A stretch of DNA of 63,727 bases, counting the filler, from Hyphochytrium catenoides (taxonomy: Eukaryota; Protista; Hyphochytriomycota), in the NCBI GenBank assembly GCA_900088475.1. It is 8 parts of 8 records of this genome, joined end to end, with 100 filler letters (N's around TTAATTAATTAA, not from the genome) between each part and the next. Parts side by side here need not be neighbours in the genome. Positions count along the whole stretch, not along the records: positions 5,929 to 17,486 come from FLMG01003606.1; 7 more parts are not named here. One strand, written 5' to 3'. Made by a program: the position numbers and the translations under genes. Under the pieces are notes generated by a model. That model worked only from the letters and a program-made list of their open reading frames with translations, did no database searches and had not been told where the DNA came from. Numbering within the stretch: the stretch's first letter is position 1; every line of letters starts with the position of its first letter. Below are positions 5,929 through 27,672 of this stretch, one piece after another.

Positions 5929-5930
5929 CA

Positions 5931-6416
5931 CCTTTTTCGCCATCTGTAAGTGTTTTTTGTCATTTTTTAAAAAATACAGAAACTTCAAAAAAAAGACAAT
6001 TAGTACCGCAAATGAATGAAATGCGATTTGTAAAAAAACAAATTTTTTTAAATTTTTTAAATCAAAAAACACACCAATTTTCATCTCGTATCAACGGACG
6101 TTTGCTAATTGCTTGTGGATCTTTTTCTACAATAAATGTTACAACTTTATTGCAAATGAATGCATTTAATTTCTCTTTTATTGGTATGAATTGGAAAAAT
6201 TTTTATTTTTCTGATTCTTCTTTAAAAAGTATACATTTATTTAAAAAAATATTTCAAAGCAATGATTTCCCAGAATTAAATCAGAAATTAACAGAATATT
6301 TTATTTATAATTTATTAATGGCAACAGTGCTTACAAATTTGAATCAATATTCTTTATTCAAATTAAAAACACTAATGCTTTTTTCTTCAAATAATTTGAT
6401 AAGTCCTCAAAGATAA
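5931..6416 (+). CDS. Divergent mitochondrial ORF, possibly ribosomal protein L10 (5'-truncated at the scaffold edge)
   Basis: Frame is open from the scaffold start. 'RFVKKQIFLNFL...INGRLLIA...FSFIGMNWKN' follows the uL10 pattern (vvKN.ll...l...l.Gp..ia...l.gg..e). Weak pattern match by eye. Confidence 0.4.
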   Translation, partial: PFSPSVSVFCHFLKNTETSKKRQLVPQMNEMRFVKKQIFLNFLNQKTHQFSSRINGRLLIACGSFSTINVTTLLQMNAFNFSFIGMNWKNFYFSDSSLKSIHLFKKIFQSNDFPELNQKLTEYFIYNLLMATVLTNLNQYSLFKLKTLMLFSSNNLISPQR

Positions 6417-6495
6417 TAATCACATGGAAACATGTGGGACCCGACCTCTGTTTATTATCTTTCTAAAATTTTTTATGTTTTATTAATAAAAAAAA

Positions 6496-7974
6496 ATGAT
6501 GAATAATCTCTTATTTTATGTTTTAATTGCACCGCTTTTTGCAGCTATTATAATTTTAATGACTCCAAAAAAATACGATAATTTTATTCGACAATTTGGA
6601 TTATACGCAAGTTGGGGAATTTTTGGATTATCTTCATGGTTATGGTTTTTATTCAATGAAAATACTTCGAAATTTCAATTTTTAAAATCTTTTCCTATTT
6701 TTGAAGAATATAATATTCATTTTGTTATAGGAATCGATGGTATTTCATTATTTTTTATACTACTAGTTACATTTCTTTTTCCTCTATGTATTTCGGGAAG
6801 TTTTAAAAAAATAAAACTTCATGAAAAAGAATATTTTCTATGTTTTTTTATTATGGAAAGTATGTTAATTGCAGTTTTTAGTTTATTGGATATTTTATTA
6901 TTTTATGTTTTTTTTGAAAGTGTTTTAATCCCAATGTTTTTAATTATTATTATTTGGGGCTCGCGTGAACGAAAAGTACGTGCTGGTTATTTATTATTTT
7001 TATACACATTAGTTGGATCTTTAATAATGTTATACGCTATTTTAGATATTCATGCTAAGTACGGTACAACAAATTATTTAATATTATTAACAACTACATT
7101 TCCGGAAACCTATCAACATTTTGTTTGGTTAGCTTTTTTTATTTCTTTTGCTATTAAAGTACCTATGGTTCCATTTCATTTATGGTTACCAGAAGCCCAT
7201 GTTGAAGCACCAACAATGGGTTCTGTAATTTTAGCTGGAATTCTTTTAAAATTAGGAACTTATGGTATTTTGCGTTTTTTAATTGCTCTTTTCCCACTTG
7301 CAACTCATTATTATACTCCATTTGCCTATACTCTTGCAAGTATTGGCGTTATTTACGCATCTTTAACAGCTATTCGTCAAAATGATATGAAACGTATTAT
7401 TGCTTATGCTTCTGTCGCACACATGAATTTAGTTGTCATGGGTTTATTTTCATTAACTATTCAAGGAATCGAGGGTGCAATTTTACAAAGTATTAGTCAT
7501 GGTTTTGTTTCTAGTGCTTTATTTTTATGTGTAGGTGTTCTTTATGATCGTCACCATACTCGTTTATTAGAATATATAGGAGGTGTTGTTTTAATTATGC
7601 CAATTTTTTCTATTATTTTTTTATTTTTTACTATGGCTAATATTGCGTTTCCATTAACAAGTAGTTTTGTTGGGGAATTTTTAATTCTTGTAGGAGTTTT
7701 TGAAAGCAATACTTTTGTTGCTGTTTTAGGATCAACTGGTATGGTTTTAGGAACGATTTATTCTTTATGGCTTTATAATCGAATTTGTTTTGGACAAATT
7801 AAAGAAAAATATATTAAACAATTTTCTGATTTAACTCATGAAGAATTATCTGTATTTGTTCCTCTAATTTTTGCGACATTATTTTTAGGGATATATCCCC
7901 GTTTGTTATTAAAAGCATTGCATTTTTCTGTTATTGCCTTGATCAGCCATACGACAATGCATATGTTTTTATGA
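6496..7974 (+). CDS. nad4: NADH dehydrogenase subunit 4
   Basis: Motifs FYVFFESVLIPMF, KVPMVPFHLWLPEAHVEAPT, LAGILLKLGTYG, KRIIAYASVAHM; 492 aa hydrophobic protein. Confidence 0.98.
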   Translation: MMNNLLFYVLIAPLFAAIIILMTPKKYDNFIRQFGLYASWGIFGLSSWLWFLFNENTSKFQFLKSFPIFEEYNIHFVIGIDGISLFFILLVTFLFPLCISGSFKKIKLHEKEYFLCFFIMESMLIAVFSLLDILLFYVFFESVLIPMFLIIIIWGSRERKVRAGYLLFLYTLVGSLIMLYAILDIHAKYGTTNYLILLTTTFPETYQHFVWLAFFISFAIKVPMVPFHLWLPEAHVEAPTMGSVILAGILLKLGTYGILRFLIALFPLATHYYTPFAYTLASIGVIYASLTAIRQNDMKRIIAYASVAHMNLVVMGLFSLTIQGIEGAILQSISHGFVSSALFLCVGVLYDRHHTRLLEYIGGVVLIMPIFSIIFLFFTMANIAFPLTSSFVGEFLILVGVFESNTFVAVLGSTGMVLGTIYSLWLYNRICFGQIKEKYIKQFSDLTHEELSVFVPLIFATLFLGIYPRLLLKALHFSVIALISHTTMHMFL

Positions 7975-8077
7975 TTTCAAATATGTACTTTATGGCAATA
8001 TTAACGCATGATATTTGGTTGACACTTCAACATTTAATATTGTATTTCTAAAACGTTTATCGATTAATGAGGAATTT

Positions 8078-8443
8078 ATGTTAAAAACAAAATATAATTA
8101 TTTTTTTTTATTTATTTTTTTACTATTTAGTTTATTTTTAACGGCATTAATTTTTTCATTGTCTTATTTTATTGCAAATCAAAATGAAGATATTGAAAAA
8201 GTATCTCCGTATGAATGTGGTTTTGATCCTTTTGAGGATGCGCGAAACCAAGTAGATATTCATTTTTATTTAGTTGCAATTTTATTTATTATATTTGATA
8301 TTGAAGCCGCATATTTATACCCTTGGGCAGTTTCTTTAGCTAATTTAGATTCGTCTAGTTTATGGGTATTTATTGATTTTCTTGTTGAACTAGCTGTTGG
8401 TTTAGTTTATGCATGGAAATGCGGTGCTTTAGATTGGGAATAA
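8078..8443 (+). CDS. nad3: NADH dehydrogenase subunit 3
   Basis: [28 protein letters not shown]-terminal GALDWE. ATG at 8078 gives the typical 121 aa. Confidence 0.97.
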
Positions 8444-8550
8444 TGTTAAATTCAAGTTCATTTTTTTTTTTTCAATTTAACATTTCATTAAATTTATTTT
8501 TTAACTCATATGTTCTATTCCTGTTTATAAAATTTATTATTCAACAATTT

Positions 8551-9354
8551 ATGATGAAAAAATATCAAACATTACATCCATATCATATTGTAGATAAAAG
8601 CCCATGGCCTTTTTTATCAAGTATTTGCGTTTTTTCATTAACAGTAGGAGGTGTTGCTTATATGCATTTTTATCTTAAAGGAAAAACTTTGTTTTTTATG
8701 AGCCTTCTGTCTTTAACTTATGTTTTATCAAAATGGTGGAGAGATATTATTCGTGAAGGAACTTTCGAGGGACAACATACACGTGCCGTTCAAAAAAGTC
8801 TTCGAATTGGTATGATTTTATTTATTGTTTCAGAAATTATGCTTTTTTTTGCTTTTTTTTGGGGATTTTTTCATTCAGCTTTAGCACCAGTACCTGAAAT
8901 TGGATCGGTATGGCCTCCTTTAGGTATTGAAACACTATCTCCATGGGGAATTCCGTTATTAAATACTTTAATTTTATTAACTTCAGGAGCAACAATTACT
9001 GTAGCACATCATGCTATTGTTGCAGGTAAATATGACTGGGCAGTTTTTTCTCTTTTAGCCACAATTGGTTTAGGAATAATTTTTACTTTTTTACAATATG
9101 AAGAATATAAACATACCACTTTTACAATGGCAGATGGTGTATATGGTTCTACATTTTTTTCTTTAACAGGTTTACATGGATTTCATGTTTTAATAGGAAC
9201 TATTTTTATTGCTGTGACCACATCAAGAGTTTTTCTTGGCCATTTTTCCCGACAACACCATTTTGGCTTTGAAGCCAGTGCGTGGTATTGGCATTTTGTT
9301 GATGTAGTATGGATTTTACTTTACATCACAATTTACTGGTGGGGCGGTAAATAA
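8551..9354 (+). CDS. cox3: Cytochrome c oxidase subunit 3
   Basis: HPYHIVDKSPWP, GMILFIVSE, TGLHGFHV, WYWHFVDVVW. ATG 8551/8554 gives the typical length; an in-frame ATG at 8443 overlapping the nad3 stop is also possible. Confidence 0.97.
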   Translation: MMKKYQTLHPYHIVDKSPWPFLSSICVFSLTVGGVAYMHFYLKGKTLFFMSLLSLTYVLSKWWRDIIREGTFEGQHTRAVQKSLRIGMILFIVSEIMLFFAFFWGFFHSALAPVPEIGSVWPPLGIETLSPWGIPLLNTLILLTSGATITVAHHAIVAGKYDWAVFSLLATIGLGIIFTFLQYEEYKHTTFTMADGVYGSTFFSLTGLHGFHVLIGTIFIAVTTSRVFLGHFSRQHHFGFEASAWYWHFVDVVWILLYITIYWWGGK

Positions 9355-9360
9355 TATTAC

Positions 9361-10407
9361 ATGACGAAAATGATGAAAATGATGAAAATGACGACAATGT
9401 TACAAAATTATAAAAACAAAATTCTAATATATTTTCAAATTTTCCCTTTTTTTTTCGTCTTGTTTGCATTTTTTTTCCTAACAAGTTATGGGATTTTATT
9501 CTATTTTTTGGTAAACCGTTCTTCAGAAACAGCAGAAATTTTGACGGCTCATTTAAATTTTTGTTTATCTGATGGTTACATAAATTTAAAAGAAGAAGAA
9601 CAATCTTCAAAATCATCTAACATTGAAATCATTCGTGTTCAAAAAAATTATGTTCTTCAAGTAAATACAGAAACGGCTGATATTACAATAACATTGACCG
9701 ATGAAATGCAAGAGGAATTAACTCGAAATATGAGTATAAAAACGAACCTCGAAAATATTATGGAAGATTTTAAAAATCCTGAATATCGTCAAAAATTTAT
9801 GAGCCACCCTCTGATGGATAAAGCTATTATGAATTTGCAAAAATCTTTTGAACTTTCAAAACAAGATAATATAGATCCAAAAACTTTTCTAATCGTGGCT
9901 TTTGTAACTATAGGTCTTTCAATTGCTGGTGGATATTACATTCATTATTCTTTTAAAAATGAAATCATGTCTTTTTTAAATTCTTTAAATTTAAACAAAA
10001 ATGATATGTCTTCTATTGCAGATCAAGAAAAAGCTATAAAAAATTTTATAAAAAGTTGTTTTGAAACACAGATTGCTTTGCTTAAAGAGGAACTGTCTGC
10101 ACTGAAACAAGAATCCATTCCTGTTGGAAAGATATTAGTAGGTCAAAAAGGAATATTTGATCAAGATCAAAAATTGTTTAAACTGACTATGTCACGTTTT
10201 TCAGTTTTTGATGCTCGTATAACAAATTTAGAGGGTGCTATACAAAATTTAGATTCTCTTGTTTTAAATTTAGAAACCCTTTTAAATATACAAGAAAAAA
10301 TTTTAAAATCTGTCGCAGCAAAAAAAGAAGAATCATTTGATAAAAATGATATTATAATTAGTATCGTATCAGAAATTTTTGATATGTTGAAATCTAAAAA
10401 AAAATAA
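9361..10407 (+). CDS. Unknown mitochondrial membrane protein orf348 (two TM segments plus coiled-coil C-terminus); paralog of orf310
   Basis: Long open frame in very AT-rich DNA starting 7 nt after the cox3 stop; hydrophobic segments near aa 22-50 and 176-195; clear similarity to the next ORF. Start uncertain because of several in-frame ATGs in 9-bp repeats. Confidence 0.85.
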   Translation: MTKMMKMMKMTTMLQNYKNKILIYFQIFPFFFVLFAFFFLTSYGILFYFLVNRSSETAEILTAHLNFCLSDGYINLKEEEQSSKSSNIEIIRVQKNYVLQVNTETADITITLTDEMQEELTRNMSIKTNLENIMEDFKNPEYRQKFMSHPLMDKAIMNLQKSFELSKQDNIDPKTFLIVAFVTIGLSIAGGYYIHYSFKNEIMSFLNSLNLNKNDMSSIADQEKAIKNFIKSCFETQIALLKEELSALKQESIPVGKILVGQKGIFDQDQKLFKLTMSRFSVFDARITNLEGAIQNLDSLVLNLETLLNIQEKILKSVAAKKEESFDKNDIIISIVSEIFDMLKSKKK

Positions 10408-10499
10408 CAACCTTCCCTTTTATTTTATAAACGGAGCCTATCGACCGACAGATAGTCCCCGTTCTCTTCTCCTATTTCCTTTCCCGTATTAGACTATAA

Positions 10500-11432
10500 A
10501 TGATTTTTTTTCCGAACCAGTTACAAGAAAAGTGGTACTATTGGTACCATACCCTTAAAATTTCATCAACGGTTTTTTTCTTATTTTTATTTCTGGTGAT
10601 CCTTATTTTAAATATCGTAAGTCGTCAAAGCTTTTTTGACAATGCAGAAAATTTCATAGTTTCTTTAAACTCTATTTTATCTGAAGGGTCGTTAATTTTG
10701 GATGAACATGAGAATTCAACTAATTTAACAAATGAGACTAAAGAAAATACTGCAATATCTGACGATATTCAAAAGGAAGAAATTGAAACTCCAGAAGATT
10801 CTATAAAAATGACTTTAGATGACATTTTGGAAAATTTTAAAGATCCAGAATATCGTAAAAAGTTTATTAATCATCCTGCCGTAGAAAAAGCTGTTTTTAA
10901 TTTACAAAAAGCTATTGAAAATACAAAACAAGAGGATATTGATATAAAAGTTTTTCTAGGGATAACCGCTATATGTGTAATTGTTACACTTGCTGGTACA
11001 ATTATAATACACTATTCTTTTAAAAACGAAATCATATCTTTTTTAAATTCTTTAAATTTAAAAAAAGATGATAGTTCGATGTCTAATCTAGAAAAAGCTT
11101 TAAAAGATTTTATACAAAGTTGCTTACAAACTCACTCAGAAATCTTAAAACAAGAAGCTGATCATATTAAAGAAATTTTAAATAATCAAGAGGTAAATAA
11201 GAATTTAACAGATGTTCTAATTAACCGTCTTTATGTTATTAATGATCAAATCAAAAATGTTGTCAGTTCACTAAAGAGGTTGGAAGACTTTGAGAAAAGT
11301 ATCAATAAGCTTTTAAAAGCGCAACAACCAATTTTTATAGATTTAATAGCGAAAAATGACGCTGCTTGTGAAAAAGTGGATGCTGTTCATAATGTACTTT
11401 CTCAATTGCTACAATCGAGACCGAGAAAATAA
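10500..11432 (+). CDS. Unknown mitochondrial membrane protein orf310; paralog of orf348
   Basis: 310-aa frame with the same architecture; shares FKxPEYRxKFxxHP, NLQK and HYSFKNEI(M/I)SFLNSLNL with orf348. Confidence 0.85.
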   Translation: MIFFPNQLQEKWYYWYHTLKISSTVFFLFLFLVILILNIVSRQSFFDNAENFIVSLNSILSEGSLILDEHENSTNLTNETKENTAISDDIQKEEIETPEDSIKMTLDDILENFKDPEYRKKFINHPAVEKAVFNLQKAIENTKQEDIDIKVFLGITAICVIVTLAGTIIIHYSFKNEIISFLNSLNLKKDDSSMSNLEKALKDFIQSCLQTHSEILKQEADHIKEILNNQEVNKNLTDVLINRLYVINDQIKNVVSSLKRLEDFEKSINKLLKAQQPIFIDLIAKNDAACEKVDAVHNVLSQLLQSRPRK

Positions 11433-11526
11433 ATTTTGCACATTACTGTATGTATCGATGATTTAACTTTTAAAAATGTTTAATTAGATTTAAATTATAT
11501 TTTTTTTTATTATAATAAAATAACAT

Positions 11527-11599
11527 CCCGAGTTTTTGTTCCGGTTCAAAATACTTAAACTTCTTTTAGTATCTTTGGGCTCAAATCCCATACTCGTTA
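11527..11599 (+). ncRNA. tRNA-like cloverleaf (degenerate tRNA or t-element)
   Basis: Acceptor CGAGT/ACTCG, D-arm TTG-TTCCGGTT-CAA, stem ATACT/AGTAT, T-arm TGGG-CTCAAAT-CCCA. Anticodon loop is non-canonical (12 nt) and acceptor positions 1-2 mismatch. Confidence 0.4.
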
Positions 11600-11792
11600 A
11601 ATATCTATGTCAAAAAATATTTAAAAAACTTAATATATTGAAACATATTTTTGTTGCAAAACAATCTAAGTCAATGTTTTATTTCGGTGGGGGTAAAACA
11701 TCAACCGACTTCTTCAAAAAAAAATGTCCCGACGGCATTTTGCCTTTTTTTTTTGTTGAAGTACCTGCCTTTTTTTTCAAATTTTAAAAACT

Positions 11793-13280
11793 ATGATGAT
11801 TTTTGAATTTTATTATTTAATTGTTCTTTTGTTCGGATTAATTTATTTTGTTATAATTTCAAATAAAATAGTTAGAAATTATCATCTTGCGTGTTATTTT
11901 GGTATTTTATTACTTTTCAATGGTTTTTTGATTACTTCATATGAATCTGGAACTATTCCTCAAATTTTTTTTGAAGGTTCCTTTATTTTAGATACGTTAG
12001 CAAAATACGGTAAAAATTTAATTTGTTTTATTTCCATTCTATGTTTTTTAATTAATTCCGTTTTTGTAAAAAAAACTGATGGTTCTTTTGAATATATTTT
12101 TATACATCTTTTTGCTATTTATGGTATGTGTTTATTGGTTGGTGCATATGATTTTATTTTAATTTATTTAGCTATTGAATTACAAAGTTTAAATTTATAT
12201 ATTTTAGCTACAAGCCGACCTAAATCTGCATATTCTGTCGAAGCTGGAATTAAATATTTTATTTTAGGTTCATTAGCTTCGGGTATCCTTGTATTTGGTT
12301 TAGCATTGATTTACCTAGCAACAGGTATGCATACTTTAGGTGATTTATCAACGTACATGTCTTCATACGCATCCATTTCTTTAGAAAATGATGATTTACT
12401 ATTATATCCTCCATTATTTGTTTTTGTTGGTATTGGCTTATTTTTATGTGGTTTATTATTTAAACTTGGAGCAGCACCTTTCCATACTTGGGTAGCTGAT
12501 GTTTATGAAGGTGCTCCATTGCATATTACCATGTTTTTTGCTTCTGTTCCTAAAATTGCCATTTTATTTTTTCTAGTACGTTTTTGTGGTATTATTTTAT
12601 CTGATTGTATTTATGTTTGGAGTTCAATTATTGCAATGTCATCATTATTCTCTTTTTTATTTGGGAGTTTAGGTGGTATGTATCAATTTAAATTAAAAAG
12701 ATTATTTGCATTTAGTTCTATCAATCATGTTGGTTATATGCTTATAGGTTTGTTAACATACAGTCAATTGGGATTAAGTGGTTTAATTTTATATTTAGTC
12801 GTTTATGTTTTGGGTGTTTTGGGATTATGGATTTTATTAATGTCTTTTGAACAATCAAATATTTCTAATAAATTTGTTCCGAAATCGATTCAATATATTA
12901 CAGATTTAGTAGGATTAGGAAAAATACATCGTTTTTTTGCAATTCTTTTTGTTATTTTTTTATTTTCAATGGGAGGTATCCCCCCATTTGGCGGTTTTTA
13001 TATTAAAGCTTATTTATTTTTCGGTGCATTAGATTCAAAATTAAATGCTTTGATTTTTTTTGCAATATTATCAAGTATGGTTTCAATTTTTTATTATTTA
13101 CGTCTTGTAAAAATTATTTATTTTAAACCAAAAAATATGAGAGAATCAAAACTTTTATATATGCCTCAAATTAAAAGTGAAATGGCTTGGATTTTATCTT
13201 TTATTTTAGTTTTTTTAGTTTTTTTTCTTTTTGCTTCTGAAACATTACTTTATTTTTGTCAAGATTTAATAGCATTCTAA
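11793..13280 (+). CDS. nad2: NADH dehydrogenase subunit 2
   Basis: YLAIELQSL, EAGIKYFILG, FKLGAAPFHTWVADVYEGAP, KRLFAFSSINH, SMGGIPPFGGF; 495 aa. Confidence 0.97.
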   Translation: MMIFEFYYLIVLLFGLIYFVIISNKIVRNYHLACYFGILLLFNGFLITSYESGTIPQIFFEGSFILDTLAKYGKNLICFISILCFLINSVFVKKTDGSFEYIFIHLFAIYGMCLLVGAYDFILIYLAIELQSLNLYILATSRPKSAYSVEAGIKYFILGSLASGILVFGLALIYLATGMHTLGDLSTYMSSYASISLENDDLLLYPPLFVFVGIGLFLCGLLFKLGAAPFHTWVADVYEGAPLHITMFFASVPKIAILFFLVRFCGIILSDCIYVWSSIIAMSSLFSFLFGSLGGMYQFKLKRLFAFSSINHVGYMLIGLLTYSQLGLSGLILYLVVYVLGVLGLWILLMSFEQSNISNKFVPKSIQYITDLVGLGKIHRFFAILFVIFLFSMGGIPPFGGFYIKAYLFFGALDSKLNALIFFAILSSMVSIFYYLRLVKIIYFKPKNMRESKLLYMPQIKSEMAWILSFILVFLVFFLFASETLLYFCQDLIAF

Positions 13281-13477
13281 GATCTTGTATTTTTAAAACA
13301 AAATTATAATCGTAATTAAACATTCTTATTTTCTTTAATATGATTAACCTTATATATCCGTCATATATATTTTTTCTATGAAAAAAAGAAAATTCATAAA
13401 AATTTTATATTTTGTTTTTTGTTGTTAAGTGTTTTAGAAGGAAATTCACTTTTTTTAATTTCTATATTTTATTTTTT

Positions 13478-14047
13478 ATGAAAAACAAATCGAATCATTT
13501 ACTAAAGCAAGAATTTATTAATTATTTGCAACGTGTGCTACCAATCTATTCTTGGTATATCCAACATAATGAATTGTATCTTTATGTTCCACCATCATTA
13601 ATTCAAAAGATAGTATTTTTCCTTAAATACCATAGTTTAACTCAATATAAAATTTTAGTAGATATCGCTGGTGTAGATTATCCAACAAAAGGGTTCGATC
13701 GTTTTGATGTTGTTTATCATTTTTTAAGTATTCATAGTCATTCACGAATTTCTTTAAAAATTCGTGTAAATGAAGTGGTTCCTATTCCTACACTTATAGA
13801 GGAATTTCCTAATGCAAATTGGTTAGAGCGCGAAGTGTTTGATATGTTTGGTGTAAGATTTGAAGGTCATCCAGATTTACGTCGTATTTTAACAGATTAT
13901 GGTTTTAAAGGACATCCTTTACGTAAAGATTTTCCATTAGTTGGTTTTTATGAATTAAAATATGATAATATTAGTTCACGTATTCTTTATGAATCGATTG
14001 AACTTGACCAAAATCCTAAAATGGAAATACAATATTCGCCTTCTTAG
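13478..14047 (+). CDS. nad9: NADH dehydrogenase subunit 9
   Basis: DIAGVDYP, WLEREVFDMFG, HPDLRRILTDYGFKGHPLRKDFPL. ATG at 13478 gives 189 aa. Confidence 0.97.
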   Translation: MKNKSNHLLKQEFINYLQRVLPIYSWYIQHNELYLYVPPSLIQKIVFFLKYHSLTQYKILVDIAGVDYPTKGFDRFDVVYHFLSIHSHSRISLKIRVNEVVPIPTLIEEFPNANWLEREVFDMFGVRFEGHPDLRRILTDYGFKGHPLRKDFPLVGFYELKYDNISSRILYESIELDQNPKMEIQYSPS

Positions 14048-14157
14048 GATTAAGGTTTTAATTTTTTTTTTTCTGATATATTTATTTTTAAATTCGTTTT
14101 TTTGCGTAAAATTTTACGCAATCTTGAATCTCTTTTTTTTATGAAATAACGTAATCA

Positions 14158-15480
14158 ATGATGTTTTATTTTTTTCCACAACAAGATGCTGCCGTAAGAT
14201 GGCAAATGGGATTTCAAGATCCTGCAACTCCAGTAGCCGAAGGTATTTTCGACTTTCACCATGAATTATTTAATATTATCGTTTTTATTGTTGTTTTTGT
14301 CGGTATATTATTAGCTCGTTGTATTCAATTATTTAATTCTAAACAAAATCCAGTTCCAGCTAAGTTTGTTCATAATACTATGGCAGAAATTATTTGGACA
14401 TTAACACCAGCATATCTTTTATTAGTTATCGCAATACCATCATTTGCTTTATTATATTCTATGGATGAATGTATTGACCCACAAATTACTATAAAAGCAA
14501 TTGGTCATCAATGGTATTGGTCATACGAATATTCTGATTACAATACAAAAGAAAAAGATGATTTCGCTTTTGATAGTTATATGATTAATGATAATGATTT
14601 ACAAAAAGGACAACTTCGTTTATTAGAAGTAGATCGTCGCGTTGTTGTTCCTATAAATACGCATGTTCGTGTCTTGACAACATCTGCAGACGTTATACAT
14701 AGTTGGGCAGTTCCTTCATTAGGTGTAAAAATAGATGCATGCCCTGGTCGTATAAATCAAACCTCTTTTTTTATTAAACGTGGAGGAACTTTTTATGGAC
14801 AATGTAGTGAAATTTGTGGAGTAAATCATGGATTTATGCCAATTGTAATCACCGCTGTCAAATTAAGTGAATATTCAGCTTGGTTATCCAATAAAGGTAA
14901 TGTTATTACAGAAATTCCAAACACAACGAATGTTTCCGAAAGTCTTTCCGAAAGTCTTACAGAAAAGACAAATGACTCACAAAATGTGCAACAAAATTTA
15001 GAAAATCTACCAGCAATTCTTAAACCAAAACAACAAAACCAAAATACATTTGTTGAAAATAAAGCTTTAGCAGAAAACAAATCGACCCAGGCTTCTGAAA
15101 CCACAATTGTTCGAAAAGATCCTCCATCTTTTAATCGAAATCGTTTTTTTTCAAGACCAGAACCAACAAATCCATTTGAGCAGTTTCTTAAAATTAAGCC
15201 ACGTACAGCAGAAGATAAAAAACTTCACGAAACAATGCAAAGACTTTCTGAGGAATTTAAAAAAAATGTGGAAAAAGAAACTTCAAAATTAAGGGCTTCA
15301 AAAACAGAAGCTCCAAAAACAGAAGCTCCAAAAACAGAGGTTAAAAAAGATAAATTAGGAGATCCTATTAAGCCAGTAAGTCAGTGGGAACCAGTTCCAT
15401 TTAATCCAAAATGGAAAGATAAATTGGGAGATCCAGTAGAAAAACCAGAATCACAATCTACAGAAAAAAAAAATGATTAA
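14158..15480 (+). CDS. cox2: Cytochrome c oxidase subunit 2 with long C-terminal extension
   Basis: [31 protein letters not shown], CuA motif [12 protein letters not shown]. Frame continues ~190 codons past the usual end. Confidence 0.96.
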
Positions 15481-15588
15481 ATAACAAATATGTTTTAAGG
15501 CTATATATTTTAAAATATCAATTTTGACCATATGCTATTATGCATTCTTTTAGATTTTTTGAAGGAATTTTGGAAAAAAAAAAACTAA

Positions 15589-17178
<1,590 letters not shown>

Positions 17179-17238
17179 TTACATCTCATTATAATTTTTT
17201 TTATGTTAATGTTCAATTTAATTCTGTTTCAGAAATGA

Positions 17239-17278
17239 AAATAAAAATGCAATATATTAATATATTGCATTTTTATTT
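17239..17278. terminator. Perfect 40-bp palindrome downstream of cox1 (candidate 3' processing/termination hairpin)
   Basis: AAATAAAAATGCAATATATT|AATATATTGCATTTTTATTT checked base by base. The function is inference. Confidence 0.5.
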
Positions 17279-17337
17279 AAGTCTTTTTTTATTTCTGTGT
17301 TAACATTTAACATCAAAAACTTTGTTAAAGGTGTAGG

Positions 17338-17486
17338 TTGAATGTGGGACGTTTTGTGGCAAAATCGAAGTCAAAACCTTCTTTAAAAAACAAAAAAAAC
17401 ACTTCTGCGCCAAAAACGAATCCATCTGAAATACAAAAATCTGCAACAAAATCTGCAAGTGCTGCTCCTAGTGAATTATCAAGTTT
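17338..17486 (+). CDS. Truncated mitochondrial ORF, possibly the N-terminus of ATP synthase subunit alpha with an extension
   Basis: Open K/S/A-rich frame ending AAPSELSS at the scaffold edge, resembling the Atp1 N-terminal motif (A.P.E.SS.L). Only a TTG/GTG start is available. Confidence 0.3.
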
Positions 17487-26350: not shown

Positions 26351-26834
26351 CCGTCAACCTCTTTCTTATCGTGAATCTTCCTATTTAGTACATAGAGATC
26401 ATCCTGGAGCTTCGCCTTCTGCTGCTTCAGCGCGACCTTTCTCGTCAGCGGTGTTGAGTGAGACAGACCAGAGCCTACGGGAGGGGGAGAGATAGAGAGA
26501 GACGACGTGGCGGCCTTCTTTCCTTCTGAGGTCTCCGCAGGCTGTCCGTTGCTTTCCCGAGAGGAAGACGCTGACGAGCCACTCGACTGGTTTGTCCTCT
26601 GTCTAATAACGGGACCACCGAGGATGTTTCTCTCCTCTCCCTCACACACTGTCCCTGACTTGACCAGCTCCTCGATCTCCTGCGAGCTACGGAGCTTGCC
26701 AGCCACAAGTCTTCGCTGTGAGGACAATAAGAGCAATAGAGTTAGCCCACAGGGGAAGAACTTTCGCTATTATCAGAGCAGTCGCTTGTGGCATTGAAGG
26801 GGAGAGAGAGAGAAAGAGAGCGAGAGCGAGCGAG

Positions 26835-26868
<34 letters not shown>

Positions 26869-27672
26869 AGAGAGAGAGACCAGAGCGATTGGAGAGAGAA
26901 AGAAAGAGTGTGTGTGTAGGGGGTGTGAACCGGGGGGAGAGAGAGAGAGAGAGAGAGACCAACGAGAGAGAGTGACAGGTCGTCAGACAGAGAGAAAGAA
27001 AACAATGGGAGACGAGCAATGGAGAGACAAAGCAATCGAGTCAAAAAGAGGAGGAAGAAAGAGAGGGAAAAAGAAAAAAGAGACAAGCCAGACAGACAGG
27101 CAGAGAGCTAGGGAACTAGCGAGAGAGGGAGAGAGAGCCCTGGGGACCTGCTGAGGGGAAGCGATCTGGGGCGCGTGTTGAGGCGGAGGCAACGCCGCTA
27201 AACTCTTGGCGGGAACCTTGACGCTGTCTTTTGGCATGACGCCTGGCCCTTCTAAAGACTGCAGACCTGCCTTCAATTGCTGAAGAGAAAACAGAAGACA
27301 GTGGGAAGGACAGGATAAGCAGAGAGAGGGAGACGGAGTGAGAGAGAGAGAGAGAGTTAAAGAGAGTTAAGTTGGAAGGAAGCTTTAACAGAACTTTATC
27401 AGGAAGAGGAAGGTTGGACCGTTATCAGAGACATGAGAAAGAGAGGGACACATCCTGAGTTGATGAAAATCTGTGTCAAGGCGTCTAAAGAGAGGGAAGA
27501 GGTGGTCTGCTCCTGCCCTCAAACCTTTGCTCATTTTTCATCTCCATCCTTCTAACCCGATCGTGCCGTTCTCTCTTTCTCTCTCCCCGTATCGTCTATT
27601 ACCTCCGTGTCGTACCCTTCTTGCCCTTGCTCTTTCTCTCGGTCAAATACACCTCCTTTGCCTTGCTTTTGT

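Follow-up and report, generated by a model that had tools for sequence, protein, structure and literature searches.

Orphan tandem paralogs encoding predicted membrane proteins between cox3 and nad2 in the mitochondrial DNA of Hyphochytrium catenoides

Mitochondrial ORFans are common in protists; the time of their origin and their genuineness as genes have rarely been established. Eustigmatophyte mitogenomes carry orfX, orfY and orfZ, which are conserved only within that one stramenopile lineage and have no homolog by HHpred; orfZ, with two predicted transmembrane (TM) regions, is presumed to be an inner-membrane protein, and de novo origin, horizontal gain and extreme divergence have all been considered as the source of these ORFs (Sevcikova et al. 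2016, PMC4824035). Oomycetes, the sister group (Pseudofungi) with nearly the same mitochondrial gene content, have unassigned mtDNA ORFs of their own (ymf98, ymf99 and ymf101, and orf273 and orf312 of Saprolegnia ferax), some of them conserved and some species-specific (Makkonen et al. 2016, PMC5093560). The two ORFs considered here, orf348 and orf310 of the hyphochytrid Hyphochytrium catenoides, resemble orfX, orfY and orfZ as ORFs without homologs in the mtDNA of a single lineage, and they raise the same question of origin. They differ in the much larger size of their products, which have an acidic loop of 100 aa and a tail of heptads, in being tandemly duplicated, and in that their insertion can be dated against relatives. 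An exhaustive profile search, with a library drawn from public genomes, revealed no sequence relationship to the eustigmatophyte ORFs and, up to E 0.001, no protein from oomycetes; unlike the oomycete ORFs, moreover, this pair sits at a cox3/nad2 position that is specific to Hyphochytrium.

Two less closely comparable systems come from animals and plants. The F-orf and M-orf of bivalves evolve fast and have predicted TM helices. These ORFans have been described as orphan ORFs encoded in the mitochondrion (Mitchell et al. 2016, PMC4979158). Neither the host biology (doubly uniparental inheritance) nor the sequences are related to what is found here, where a tandem pair with a coiled-coil tail is concerned. 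The ORFs of plant CMS, whose products impair mitochondria and are counteracted by nuclear restorers, likewise specify lineage-restricted small to medium-sized membrane proteins, lie beside essential genes and are flanked by recombination copies of other genes' flanks, but the frames of orf348 and orf310 include no known-gene segments, and the family is not confined to one species, since a relative with flanking-gene dS of 0.5-2.1 has an ortholog. Unlike in plant CMS, we know of no sexual conflict in the host.

The H. catenoides mtDNA is 48.1 kb long; the DNA examined is a fragment of it, lying in a window (the whole stretch analysed, filler included) of 63,727 nucleotides, along which all positions are counted. 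As an earlier note on this DNA had described, two long intact ORFs, orf348 (9361..10407, 348 aa) and the downstream orf310 (10500..11432, 310 aa), lie on the + strand in the same direction as the respiratory genes that flank them (as do the features given window coordinates below). According to the ORF listing, these are cox3 (8551..9354), the true start of which is probably Met47/48 of the listed ORF, and nad2 (11793..13280). The packing is tight: orf348 starts 6 nt past the cox3 stop codon, and the TTAC-ATG junction found there is common to the single ORF of a relative, orf308, to be discussed below. The existence of the two ORFs is not new; the published annotation of this mtDNA already lists them, without comment, as two of its six unassigned ORFs. 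A search of the whole 61 Mb genome for additional copies finds only these two members of the family, both on mtDNA contigs; a further pair of matches arises because the assembly contains this mtDNA a second time.

The proteins are tandem paralogs, far beyond chance (36% identity over 294 aa; BLASTP E 3e-51), and both have the sequence of elements that the earlier note had claimed for them, namely a TM segment, a hydrophilic loop, a second TM segment and a coiled-coil-like C-terminus. In orf348, a Lys-rich N-terminus (+4) leads into TM1 (9415..9516, residues 19-52; this and the other TM segments come from Kyte-Doolittle windows), followed by an acidic hydrophilic loop of 118 aa with net charge -7 (9517..9870), TM2 (9871..9945, residues 171-195) and a helical, heptad-rich C-terminal region of 153 aa (9946..10404). 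The corresponding parts of orf310 are TM1 (10545..10640, residues 16-47), a 98-aa acidic loop with net charge -12, TM2 (10935..11024, residues 146-175) and a 135-aa helical, heptad-rich tail (11025..11429). Heptad periodicity is above that of shuffled tails (p 0.03 and 0.04 for orf348 and orf310), and the best heptad windows are at homologous positions. The family's best-conserved motif, PE[YF]..K....P...KA....Q...E, falls in the last ~40 aa of the orf348 loop. The high identity claimed for the block before TM2 is there, although a recount gives 28-29 identical residues of 54 rather than 30. AlphaFold2, supplied with the three-sequence alignment, returned all-helical, unusable models (pLDDT 42.2 for orf348, 39.4 for orf308), and complex prediction for the conserved halves of orf348 and orf310 gave no answer (score 0.00), which carries no weight for or against binding.

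The earlier note's statement that the pair matches none of the standard mitochondrial genes stands after much wider searching. Pfam offers no family at E up to 1, PHROGs and NCBIfam yield nothing significant, and a PDB profile search brings up only GCN4-type coiled-coil noise, with no stalk subunit among the matches. Word-based searches of 5.8 billion proteins, with orf310 and with the three-sequence alignment, find nothing beyond orf308 (P0002), and when 1.84 billion representatives are searched exhaustively with a profile, orf308 and a fragment of the orf310 sequence are all that is found; apart from the ortholog, these searches give no homolog, whether from viruses, from plasmid-like elements or from any other source. 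Language-model protein neighbours are below chance level for both proteins (best 0.78 for orf310, none usable for orf348). An Rfam scan of 9300-11850 gives no family at E up to 1, and a JGI metagenome scan with nad2 as seed gives no match above 37% identity, and so no hyphochytrid relatives. With no homolog detectable outside one narrow lineage, orf348 and orf310 would form an orphan family limited to the Hyphochytrium lineage, a new member of the known protist mitochondrial ORFans.

The one ortholog, orf308 (308 aa), stands alone in the corresponding cox3/nad2 slot of a close relative (cox3-orf308-nad2) and keeps the architecture of TM1, acidic loop, TM2 and heptad tail. The cox3 proteins of the two species are 94% identical and those of nad2 91.5%; the ORF products are only about 25% identical. 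In four more distant relatives, in which the gene order is atp6-orf-nad4-nad3-cox3-nad2-nad9-cox2, cox3 lies directly beside nad2 with no ORF between them, and the loci fetched from these four hold no homolog of orf348 or orf310. Because there is one ORF in the slot of the close relative and none in that of the four others, the ORF is best read from these comparisons as a lineage-specific insertion between cox3 and nad2 that was later duplicated, which bears out the proposal of a lineage-specific family expanded by duplication. The duplication apparently took place in H. catenoides after its split from the one-copy relative, a timing that fits dN of 0.52 between the paralogs and 0.83-0.98 between either and orf308.

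ORFs of this length are not due to chance, because shuffles of the 2,072-nt region (27% GC) yield open frames whose maximum length averages 63 codons and never exceeds 130. In such DNA, a random codon is a stop in about 8% of cases; three frames of 308-348 codons are nonetheless open, at nucleotide divergences of 39% between the paralogs and 54% to the ortholog. In a neutral-drift simulation, 0.3% of copies are still open after 0.1 substitutions per site (P<0.003). GC content falls over the three codon positions as it does in coding sequence (0.36-0.39, 0.23-0.24, 0.18-0.20), and synonymous codon usage correlates with that of known mitochondrial genes at 0.77-0.81 in frame, as against 0.18-0.63 out of frame. 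The reading frame, then, is maintained by selection. The constraint on amino acid sequence is weak: setting the ORF dN to the ortholog (0.85-0.98) against the dS of the flanking genes, which ranges from 0.5 to 2.1 with the method of estimation, makes omega roughly 0.4-1. The sequence of these ORFs changes about twenty times faster than that of the neighbouring genes while the frames are kept open. Positive selection, suggested by an ORF dN (0.83) greater than the neighbours' Nei-Gojobori dS (0.5-0.6), was considered and rejected: YN00 and maximum likelihood put dS at 0.9-2.1.

Soil samples contribute some population data and metatranscriptome sequence. Metatranscriptome contigs 99-100% identical to orf348, but none to orf310, occur in libraries X15 and X6/X10; X6 and X10, which gave identical contigs at identical places, are perhaps not independent of each other, and assembled metatranscriptome contigs of this kind may contain DNA. 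In near-identical soil strains, 3 changes are synonymous and 2 nonsynonymous, and 3 nt are inserted in frame; a soil strain has an in-frame extra ATG after 9378, in the N-terminus of orf348, and a further synonymous change comes from an RNA contig. This sample of variants is too small for significance (about p 0.1 with only transitions counted). One metagenome contig of low coverage (1.4x) has a stop at codon 187 of orf310, near an error-rich contig end; it is probably an error. Both genes are probably translated, because their frames stay open against drift, their codon usage is native and orf348 sequence is present in soil metatranscriptomes.

The paralogs also share a stretch of near identity at the DNA level, 9943..9993 matching 11010-11060 at 48 of 51 positions. 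The earlier note had counted three differences here, two of them synonymous, and had seen in this a sign of protein-level constraint. The count is exact, but the argument drawn from it is weak: since the block stands out locally in nucleotide identity (p<0.0005 by codon-column shuffling) and is not conserved in orf308, the sole ortholog, it is likely that gene conversion explains it at least as well. Better evidence of selection is to be had from the open frames, the conserved architecture and the native codon usage.

Other traces of recombination lie outside the frames. From the orf310 stop codon, a 75-nt element (11426..11500) repeats, with 89% identity, the stretch beginning at the stop codon of atp8 (C4759 6317-6391). 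Further along the orf310-nad2 spacer, a degenerate rps14 fragment (11606..11686; 80% identical to C4759 1701-1780, reverse complement) is responsible for a spurious 83-aa ORF at 11536-11787. Self-BLAST of the mtDNA and all of its unassigned ORFs finds no pieces of standard genes inside orf348 or orf310; sharing occurs only from the stop codon onward. An element of the spacer just upstream of nad2 (11673..11792, ~120 nt) is largely conserved in the close relative, with most aligned positions identical, although synonymous sites of the flanking genes have diverged heavily. The 92-nt spacer between orf348 and orf310, which is relatively GC-rich, contains an imperfect 13-bp stem-loop (10430..10463) that may be a transcript-processing signal. 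A CCGAC-type spacer motif was dropped because its intergenic distribution is inconsistent.

The same mtDNA has a second, unrelated pair of ORFs, orf261 and orf685, with a near-identical N-terminal module in common; immediately ahead of orf685 is a 98% copy of the 3' end of rps3 together with the spacer downstream of it. Both pairs have a TM segment, an acidic loop and another TM segment, but this is a likeness in build: aligning the orf348/orf310/orf308 profile with that of orf261/orf685 (hhalign) gives no relationship (probability 0.4%) and so lends no support to homology. The published annotation of the H. catenoides mtDNA lacks rps7 and tatC. Among its six orphan ORFs, orf182 is linked to rpl10 by transitive homology; orf246, tried as a hidden tatC, has no Pfam match even at E 10.

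On balance, we consider it probable that orf348 and orf310 are genuine protein-coding ORFan genes, derived by tandem duplication from one founder, and that their products are two-pass inner-membrane proteins, which would form a membrane-anchored coiled-coil oligomer. The founder would have arisen in the empty cox3-nad2 spacer after the split from the relatives in which these genes are adjacent, and its tandem duplication in H. catenoides would have followed, apparently, the split from the one-copy relative; recombination would then have reshaped the 3' flank, which gained the copy of the atp8 3' flank and the rps14 fragment. If charge distribution alone is taken as the guide to topology, each protein would span the inner membrane twice, with its Lys-rich N-terminus in the matrix, an acidic loop of ~100 aa, carrying the one well-conserved helix pair, exported between TM1 and TM2 to the intermembrane space, and a heptad-rich helical tail of ~140 aa back in the matrix. 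We infer that such a coiled-coil oligomer would most likely serve an inner-membrane complex as an accessory or scaffold peculiar to this lineage; it would be a homo-oligomer in the relative with one copy and possibly a hetero-oligomer in H. catenoides. The earlier note had offered, as examples of a role, a hetero-oligomeric structural protein, an accessory respiratory subunit and a selfish (CMS-like or toxin/antidote) module. Selection would bear mainly on the open frame, the hydrophobic anchors, the charge pattern and the heptads, and less on the exact sequence.

The same observations can be read in terms of conflict. The pair could be chimeric membrane ORFs in the manner of CMS, or a toxin with its antidote, perturbing the inner membrane and kept by drive and not for any benefit to the cell. 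In favour of this are the very fast evolution of the proteins (about 25% identity against 94% and 91.5% for cox3 and nad2), their TM segments, the essential genes next door, the patchwork of atp8 3' flank and rps14 sequence behind orf310, and the shared module of orf261/orf685 with the rps3 copy ahead of orf685. Recombination copies in this style are a hallmark of plant CMS loci. Nevertheless, we regard a selfish module as rather unlikely. The frames are free of known-gene pieces, the shared segments beginning no earlier than the stop codon; codon usage is native; the family has outlasted, architecture intact, a species split with deep divergence at synonymous sites (dS 0.5-2.1); with codon bias taken into the model, the estimates do not show omega above 1; and, as the relative has one copy, a two-component toxin/antidote system is not ancestral. 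We know, besides, of no inheritance conflict in hyphochytrids. The more specific proposal of a rapidly co-evolving membrane pair in genetic conflict, whether CMS-like, toxin/antidote or one that determines how mitochondria are inherited or whether they are incompatible, strikes us as unlikely. Capture from a foreign source (a mitochondrial plasmid, a virus or the organelle of another organism) followed by domestication would account for the sudden appearance of an ORF in a conserved gene order and for the lack of a nuclear paralog, but the ORFs cannot be told apart from resident genes in GC content or codon usage, the searches already described turned up no viral, plasmid-like or other homolog (and language-model neighbours only below chance level), and no polymerase, integrase or terminal repeats are seen nearby. 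We think it quite unlikely; being a statement about origin, it is compatible with the explanation in terms of genuine ORFan genes.

Two further readings would deny the novelty of the genes or their function. Open frames that are mere by-products of a recent duplication and of recombination within a spacer, with transcription only in a polycistron and no selection on them, are suggested by an omega that may approach 1, the lack of homologs outside one narrow lineage, an evidently recombination-active region and the stop codon in a single low-coverage environmental contig. The survival of three long frames at 39-54% divergence, when drift would close nearly all of them by 0.1 substitutions per site, makes this very unlikely, as do the conserved TM positions, loop charge, heptads and motif, and GC by codon position and synonymous usage like those of translated mitochondrial genes. 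The other is that a standard gene has diverged beyond recognition, the best candidate being atp4, for the peripheral-stalk subunit b of ATP synthase, with the paralogs acting like b and b'. Tandem b/b' paralogs exist in bacteria and plastids, and other missing genes (rps7, tatC) may hide among the ORFs, as the link between orf182 and rpl10 illustrates. In a subunit b, an N-terminal membrane anchor should pass straight into a long helix in the matrix; TM2 with its heptad-rich tail of 135-153 aa (~140 aa) fits in general build and length, but TM1 and the 100-aa acidic loop are extra and have no counterpart there. Pfam, searched up to E 1, also gives no match to Mt_ATP-synt_B (PF05405), ATP-synt_B (PF00430) or another family, the PDB and 1.84-billion-protein searches being no more productive, and the slot is empty in four relatives of otherwise identical gene order, so that the gene is not ancestral at this locus. 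Since a candidate nuclear ATP4 exon exists (G000:C3288:206090-206206, matching Mt_ATP-synt_B with 26.1 bits at a curated cut-off of 21.7, with helical exons downstream), a divergent atp4 is very unlikely.

Should genuine ORFan genes be the right explanation, the interest of the locus lies in the way that the birth of a gene is bracketed: the spacer is empty in four relatives, holds one gene in a close relative and two in H. catenoides. If the proteins were dispensable passengers, the finding would be of local interest only. If, on the other hand, they are in conflict with their host, then, together with orf261/orf685, they would mark the recombination-active mtDNA of hyphochytrids as a place, outside plants, where selfish chimeric genes are generated. 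Because H. catenoides grows in culture, transcript mapping and complexome proteomics are feasible. The cox3-nad2 slot thus offers a tractable case of the origin and duplication of new mitochondrion-encoded membrane proteins, one that bears on whether lineage-specific subunits of respiratory complexes start in this way and on whether CMS-like selfish ORFs exist outside plants.

The two tandem ORFs orf348 (window 9361-10407) and orf310 (10500-11432), each found at the coordinates that an earlier note had claimed from sequence, lie in a piece of mtDNA (5929-17486; ~27% GC, standard genetic code) that reads nad4, nad3, cox3, orf348, orf310, nad2, nad9, cox2 and cox1, all on the plus strand; no tRNA genes were found in it. 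The piece is contig C1785 of a 61 Mb, 4,759-contig assembly, in which these 11,558 bp occur twice with zero mismatches, on C1785 (a 'nuclear' scaffold) and at C4759:33441-44998. This is assembly redundancy and not a nuclear copy. C4759 is the 48,127-bp mtDNA, oomycete-like in gene content (atp1, nad11, many rps/rpl genes), with an inverted rpl16 duplicate and a nad6 fragment at one end; the probable published version (LT578416) is a linear fragment of 48,124 bp ending in rpl16, beside 4,758 scaffolds. The six published ORFs without similarity can be matched to orf182, orf246, orf261, orf685, orf348 and orf310 in the present ORF list. The existence of the pair is thus already known (deposited earlier as unassigned ORFs), but its paralogy, ortholog, dated insertion, rate, architecture and flanking patchwork were not found described in the literature examined. 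Sequence of this mtDNA is also present in soil and rhizosphere metagenomes, in agreement with a soil saprotroph habit. Among the neighbors, cox2 ends in a hydrophilic C-terminal extension of ~200 aa (14860-15477) that contains KTEAP and KDKLGDP repeats; in more distant relatives the whole of cox2 measures likewise 410 aa (L032, L035) or 252-286 aa (L030, L034).

As had been proposed, the products of orf348 and orf310 are paralogous, with 36% of residues identical over 294 aa (E 3e-51). The 54-residue block preceding the second hydrophobic segment is indeed strongly similar, at 28-29 identities rather than the 30 counted by hand. Hydropathy analysis bears out two membrane segments (TM1 and TM2) around an acidic loop of 118 aa in orf348 and 98 aa in orf310, followed by tails of 153 and 135 aa, respectively. 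The coiled-coil-like character of these tails is supported as well: their heptad periodicity exceeds that of shuffled sequences, the highest-scoring windows of the two proteins correspond in position, and AlphaFold places long helices there at low confidence.

Searches of Pfam, PHROGs and NCBIfam gave no significant match to either protein, a PDB profile search returned GCN4-type coiled-coil noise and nothing else, two word-based searches covering 5.8 billion proteins added nothing and a language-model protein atlas held no usable match. An exhaustive profile search of 1.84 billion representatives matched two proteins: a 50-aa fragment on an environmental contig, identical to the end of orf310, and P0002 (E 7.6e-6). 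The statement that the pair matches no standard mitochondrial gene thus withstood all of these profile comparisons. P0002 is encoded on a 3.3-kb Logan contig (L010) in the order cox3, 308-aa ORF, nad2, so that a close relative holds one copy, orf308, in the same slot. Orf308 is built like the pair (TM1, acidic loop of 102 aa with net charge -9, TM2, strongly heptad tail). Residues conserved among all three proteins are concentrated in two places, one immediately C-terminal of TM1 (LN..S.G..L.E), the other a helix pair N-terminal of TM2 (PE[YF]..K....P...KA....Q...E), the latter being the highest-pLDDT region of an orf348 model that is unusable as a whole.

Relatives beyond L010, sought with nad2 as query, are only 44-48% identical in that protein. 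Their contigs keep the order atp6, unassigned ORF, nad4, nad3, cox3, nad2, nad9, cox2, with cox3 directly adjoining nad2 in every one (L030/L031, L032, L034, L035), and the family profile matches nothing in these loci. The family is therefore a Hyphochytrium-specific insertion. Distances (dN 0.52 between the paralogs, 0.83-0.98 to orf308) agree with a tandem duplication on the branch leading to H. catenoides; an older duplication followed by loss or gene conversion is possible. One copy in the relative, two here and none between cox3 and nad2 farther out is what the suggested lineage-specific family expanded by duplication would look like. In one of these more distant relatives the nad3-cox3 spacer contains an orphan ORF of 705 aa that is unrelated to the family (L030:6974-9091); spacers around cox3 seem to acquire orphan ORFs repeatedly in this group.

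The earlier note had read a 51-nt block with three nucleotide differences between the copies, two of them synonymous, as a sign of protein-level constraint. The count is right and nucleotide identity does peak significantly in the block (p<0.0005), but its peptide is not kept in orf308. A gene-conversion tract between tandem copies is, on these grounds, no less likely than special constraint. Selection on the frames is better argued from their openness despite divergence, from the retained architecture and from codon usage. Between H. catenoides and the L010 relative, cox3 is 94% and nad2 91.5% identical at the protein level, the ORFs 24-26%, and ORF dN is ~20 times that of the neighbors. By the Nei-Gojobori method ORF dN (0.83) exceeds the neighbors' dS (0.5-0.6), which would have implied positive selection; that reading was dropped once strong AT codon bias was modeled, the neighbors' dS then being 0.9-2.1. 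Since dS depends on method, omega is put at roughly 0.4-1 and no positive selection is claimed. In a simulation of neutral drift only 0.3% of copies kept an open frame at 0.1 substitutions per site, and by 0.2 all had lost it; the real frames persist at a nucleotide divergence of 39-54%, so that by this reckoning they cannot be neutral. GC by codon position matches resident mitochondrial genes and synonymous codon usage correlates with theirs in frame (r 0.77-0.81; 0.18-0.63 out of frame), in support of translation and of a long stay in this mtDNA.

Within the ORFs, near-identical soil strains differ by three synonymous and two nonsynonymous substitutions and by an insertion of 3 nt that keeps the frame; one further synonymous change comes from an RNA contig. 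This is a trend toward purifying selection in a sample too small for significance. One low-coverage (1.4x) environmental contig, ~98% identical (L011:1-394, window 11039-11432), has TTA>TAA at orf310 codon 187. Of its six differences, five lie in the first 50 bases, near an error-rich contig end, so the stop is probably a sequencing error; a truncated allele is possible. Soil metatranscriptomes (X15 and X6/X10, the last two of doubtful independence, having given the same contigs at the same places) contain contigs 99-100% identical to orf348, which is consistent with, but not proof of, its transcription; orf310 is not covered. The listed cox3 ORF overlaps nad3. Its true start is probably Met47/48 (about 8551), giving ~267 aa as in relatives, so that 8413-8550 would not be coding for cox3; two soil-strain variants counted as 'nonsynonymous' (8539, 8545) and a deletion of 3 nt at 8461 then fall upstream of the start.

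What these proteins are has to be judged against several alternatives. A divergent atp4, perhaps a b/b' pair, is attractive for its build and is disfavored: no profile test matched it, an Mt_ATP-synt_B exon in the nuclear genome passes the curated cut-off, and the cox3/nad2 slot is empty in more distant relatives. Two other ORFs of this mtDNA may themselves be hidden standard genes. Orf182, between atp6 and nad4 (window 5929-6416; in full C4759:33380-33928, L009:3380-3928), has positional counterparts in L035 orf189 and L034 orf244; it matches the former (BLASTP E 2e-6), which itself matches Pfam Ribosomal_L10 (E 1.1e-5), and is thus probably a very divergent rpl10. Orf246 (C4759 17583-18323, minus strand; L008:7583-8323), very hydrophobic, Phe-rich and polytopic, has no Pfam match even at E 10 and could by content be the 'missing' tatC.

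A CMS-like or selfish ORF pair is a less likely alternative, for which recombination around the genes and a second ORF pair speak. The 5' junction with cox3 (TTAC-ATG) is common to orf348 and orf308, and the 3' side of orf310 is a patchwork of three pieces. A 75-nt element (window 11426-11500), 89% identical to C4759 6317-6391, begins in both places precisely with the stop codon, that of orf310 and that of atp8, and may be a 3' processing/termination signal or a recombination footprint; the L011 strain has a 27-nt deletion inside it. A degenerate rps14 fragment follows in the orf310-nad2 spacer, and then a ~120-nt nad2-upstream element largely conserved in the L010 relative too. (An 83-aa ORF at 11536-11787 is spurious, its middle being the rps14 fragment and its end overlapping the nad2-upstream element.) A second paralogous pair, orf261 (C4759 6588-7373) and orf685 (8244-10301; both L005), is 62-67% identical over the N-terminal ~130 aa, with a ~70-aa stretch almost identical. 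Orf685 has a TM segment, acidic loop and second TM, with repeats inside the protein and a highly acidic tail of 546 aa; in orf261 only TM1 is called at the same hydropathy threshold, the region aligned to the second being hydrophobic. Directly upstream of orf685 is a 369-nt, 98% copy of the rps3 3' end and downstream spacer (C4759 7870-8238 vs 26671-27038), which looks as if flanking sequence, possibly with a part in expression, had been captured by recombination. Hhalign finds no relation of this pair to orf348/orf310. Against a selfish pair stand the absence of known-gene fragments inside the orf348/orf310 frames, a family that predates a species split and native codon usage; for a foreign origin there is no positive evidence.

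The pair compares most closely with mitochondrial ORFs restricted to other lineages, among which are the CMS ORFs of plants. Others are eustigmatophyte orfX/Y/Z, orfZ having two TM segments (PMC4824035), oomycete ymf98/99/101 and Saprolegnia orf273/orf312 (PMC5093560) and bivalve mitochondrial ORFans (PMC4979158). Orf348 and orf310 are best read, we infer, as accessory or scaffold proteins with a membrane anchor and a coiled coil. Lys-rich N-termini (+4 in orf348, +2 in orf308) and acidic loops suggest a topology with the N-terminus in, the loop out in the intermembrane space and the C-terminus in, which would leave a heptad tail in the matrix able to oligomerize, with selection acting on architecture rather than on exact sequence.
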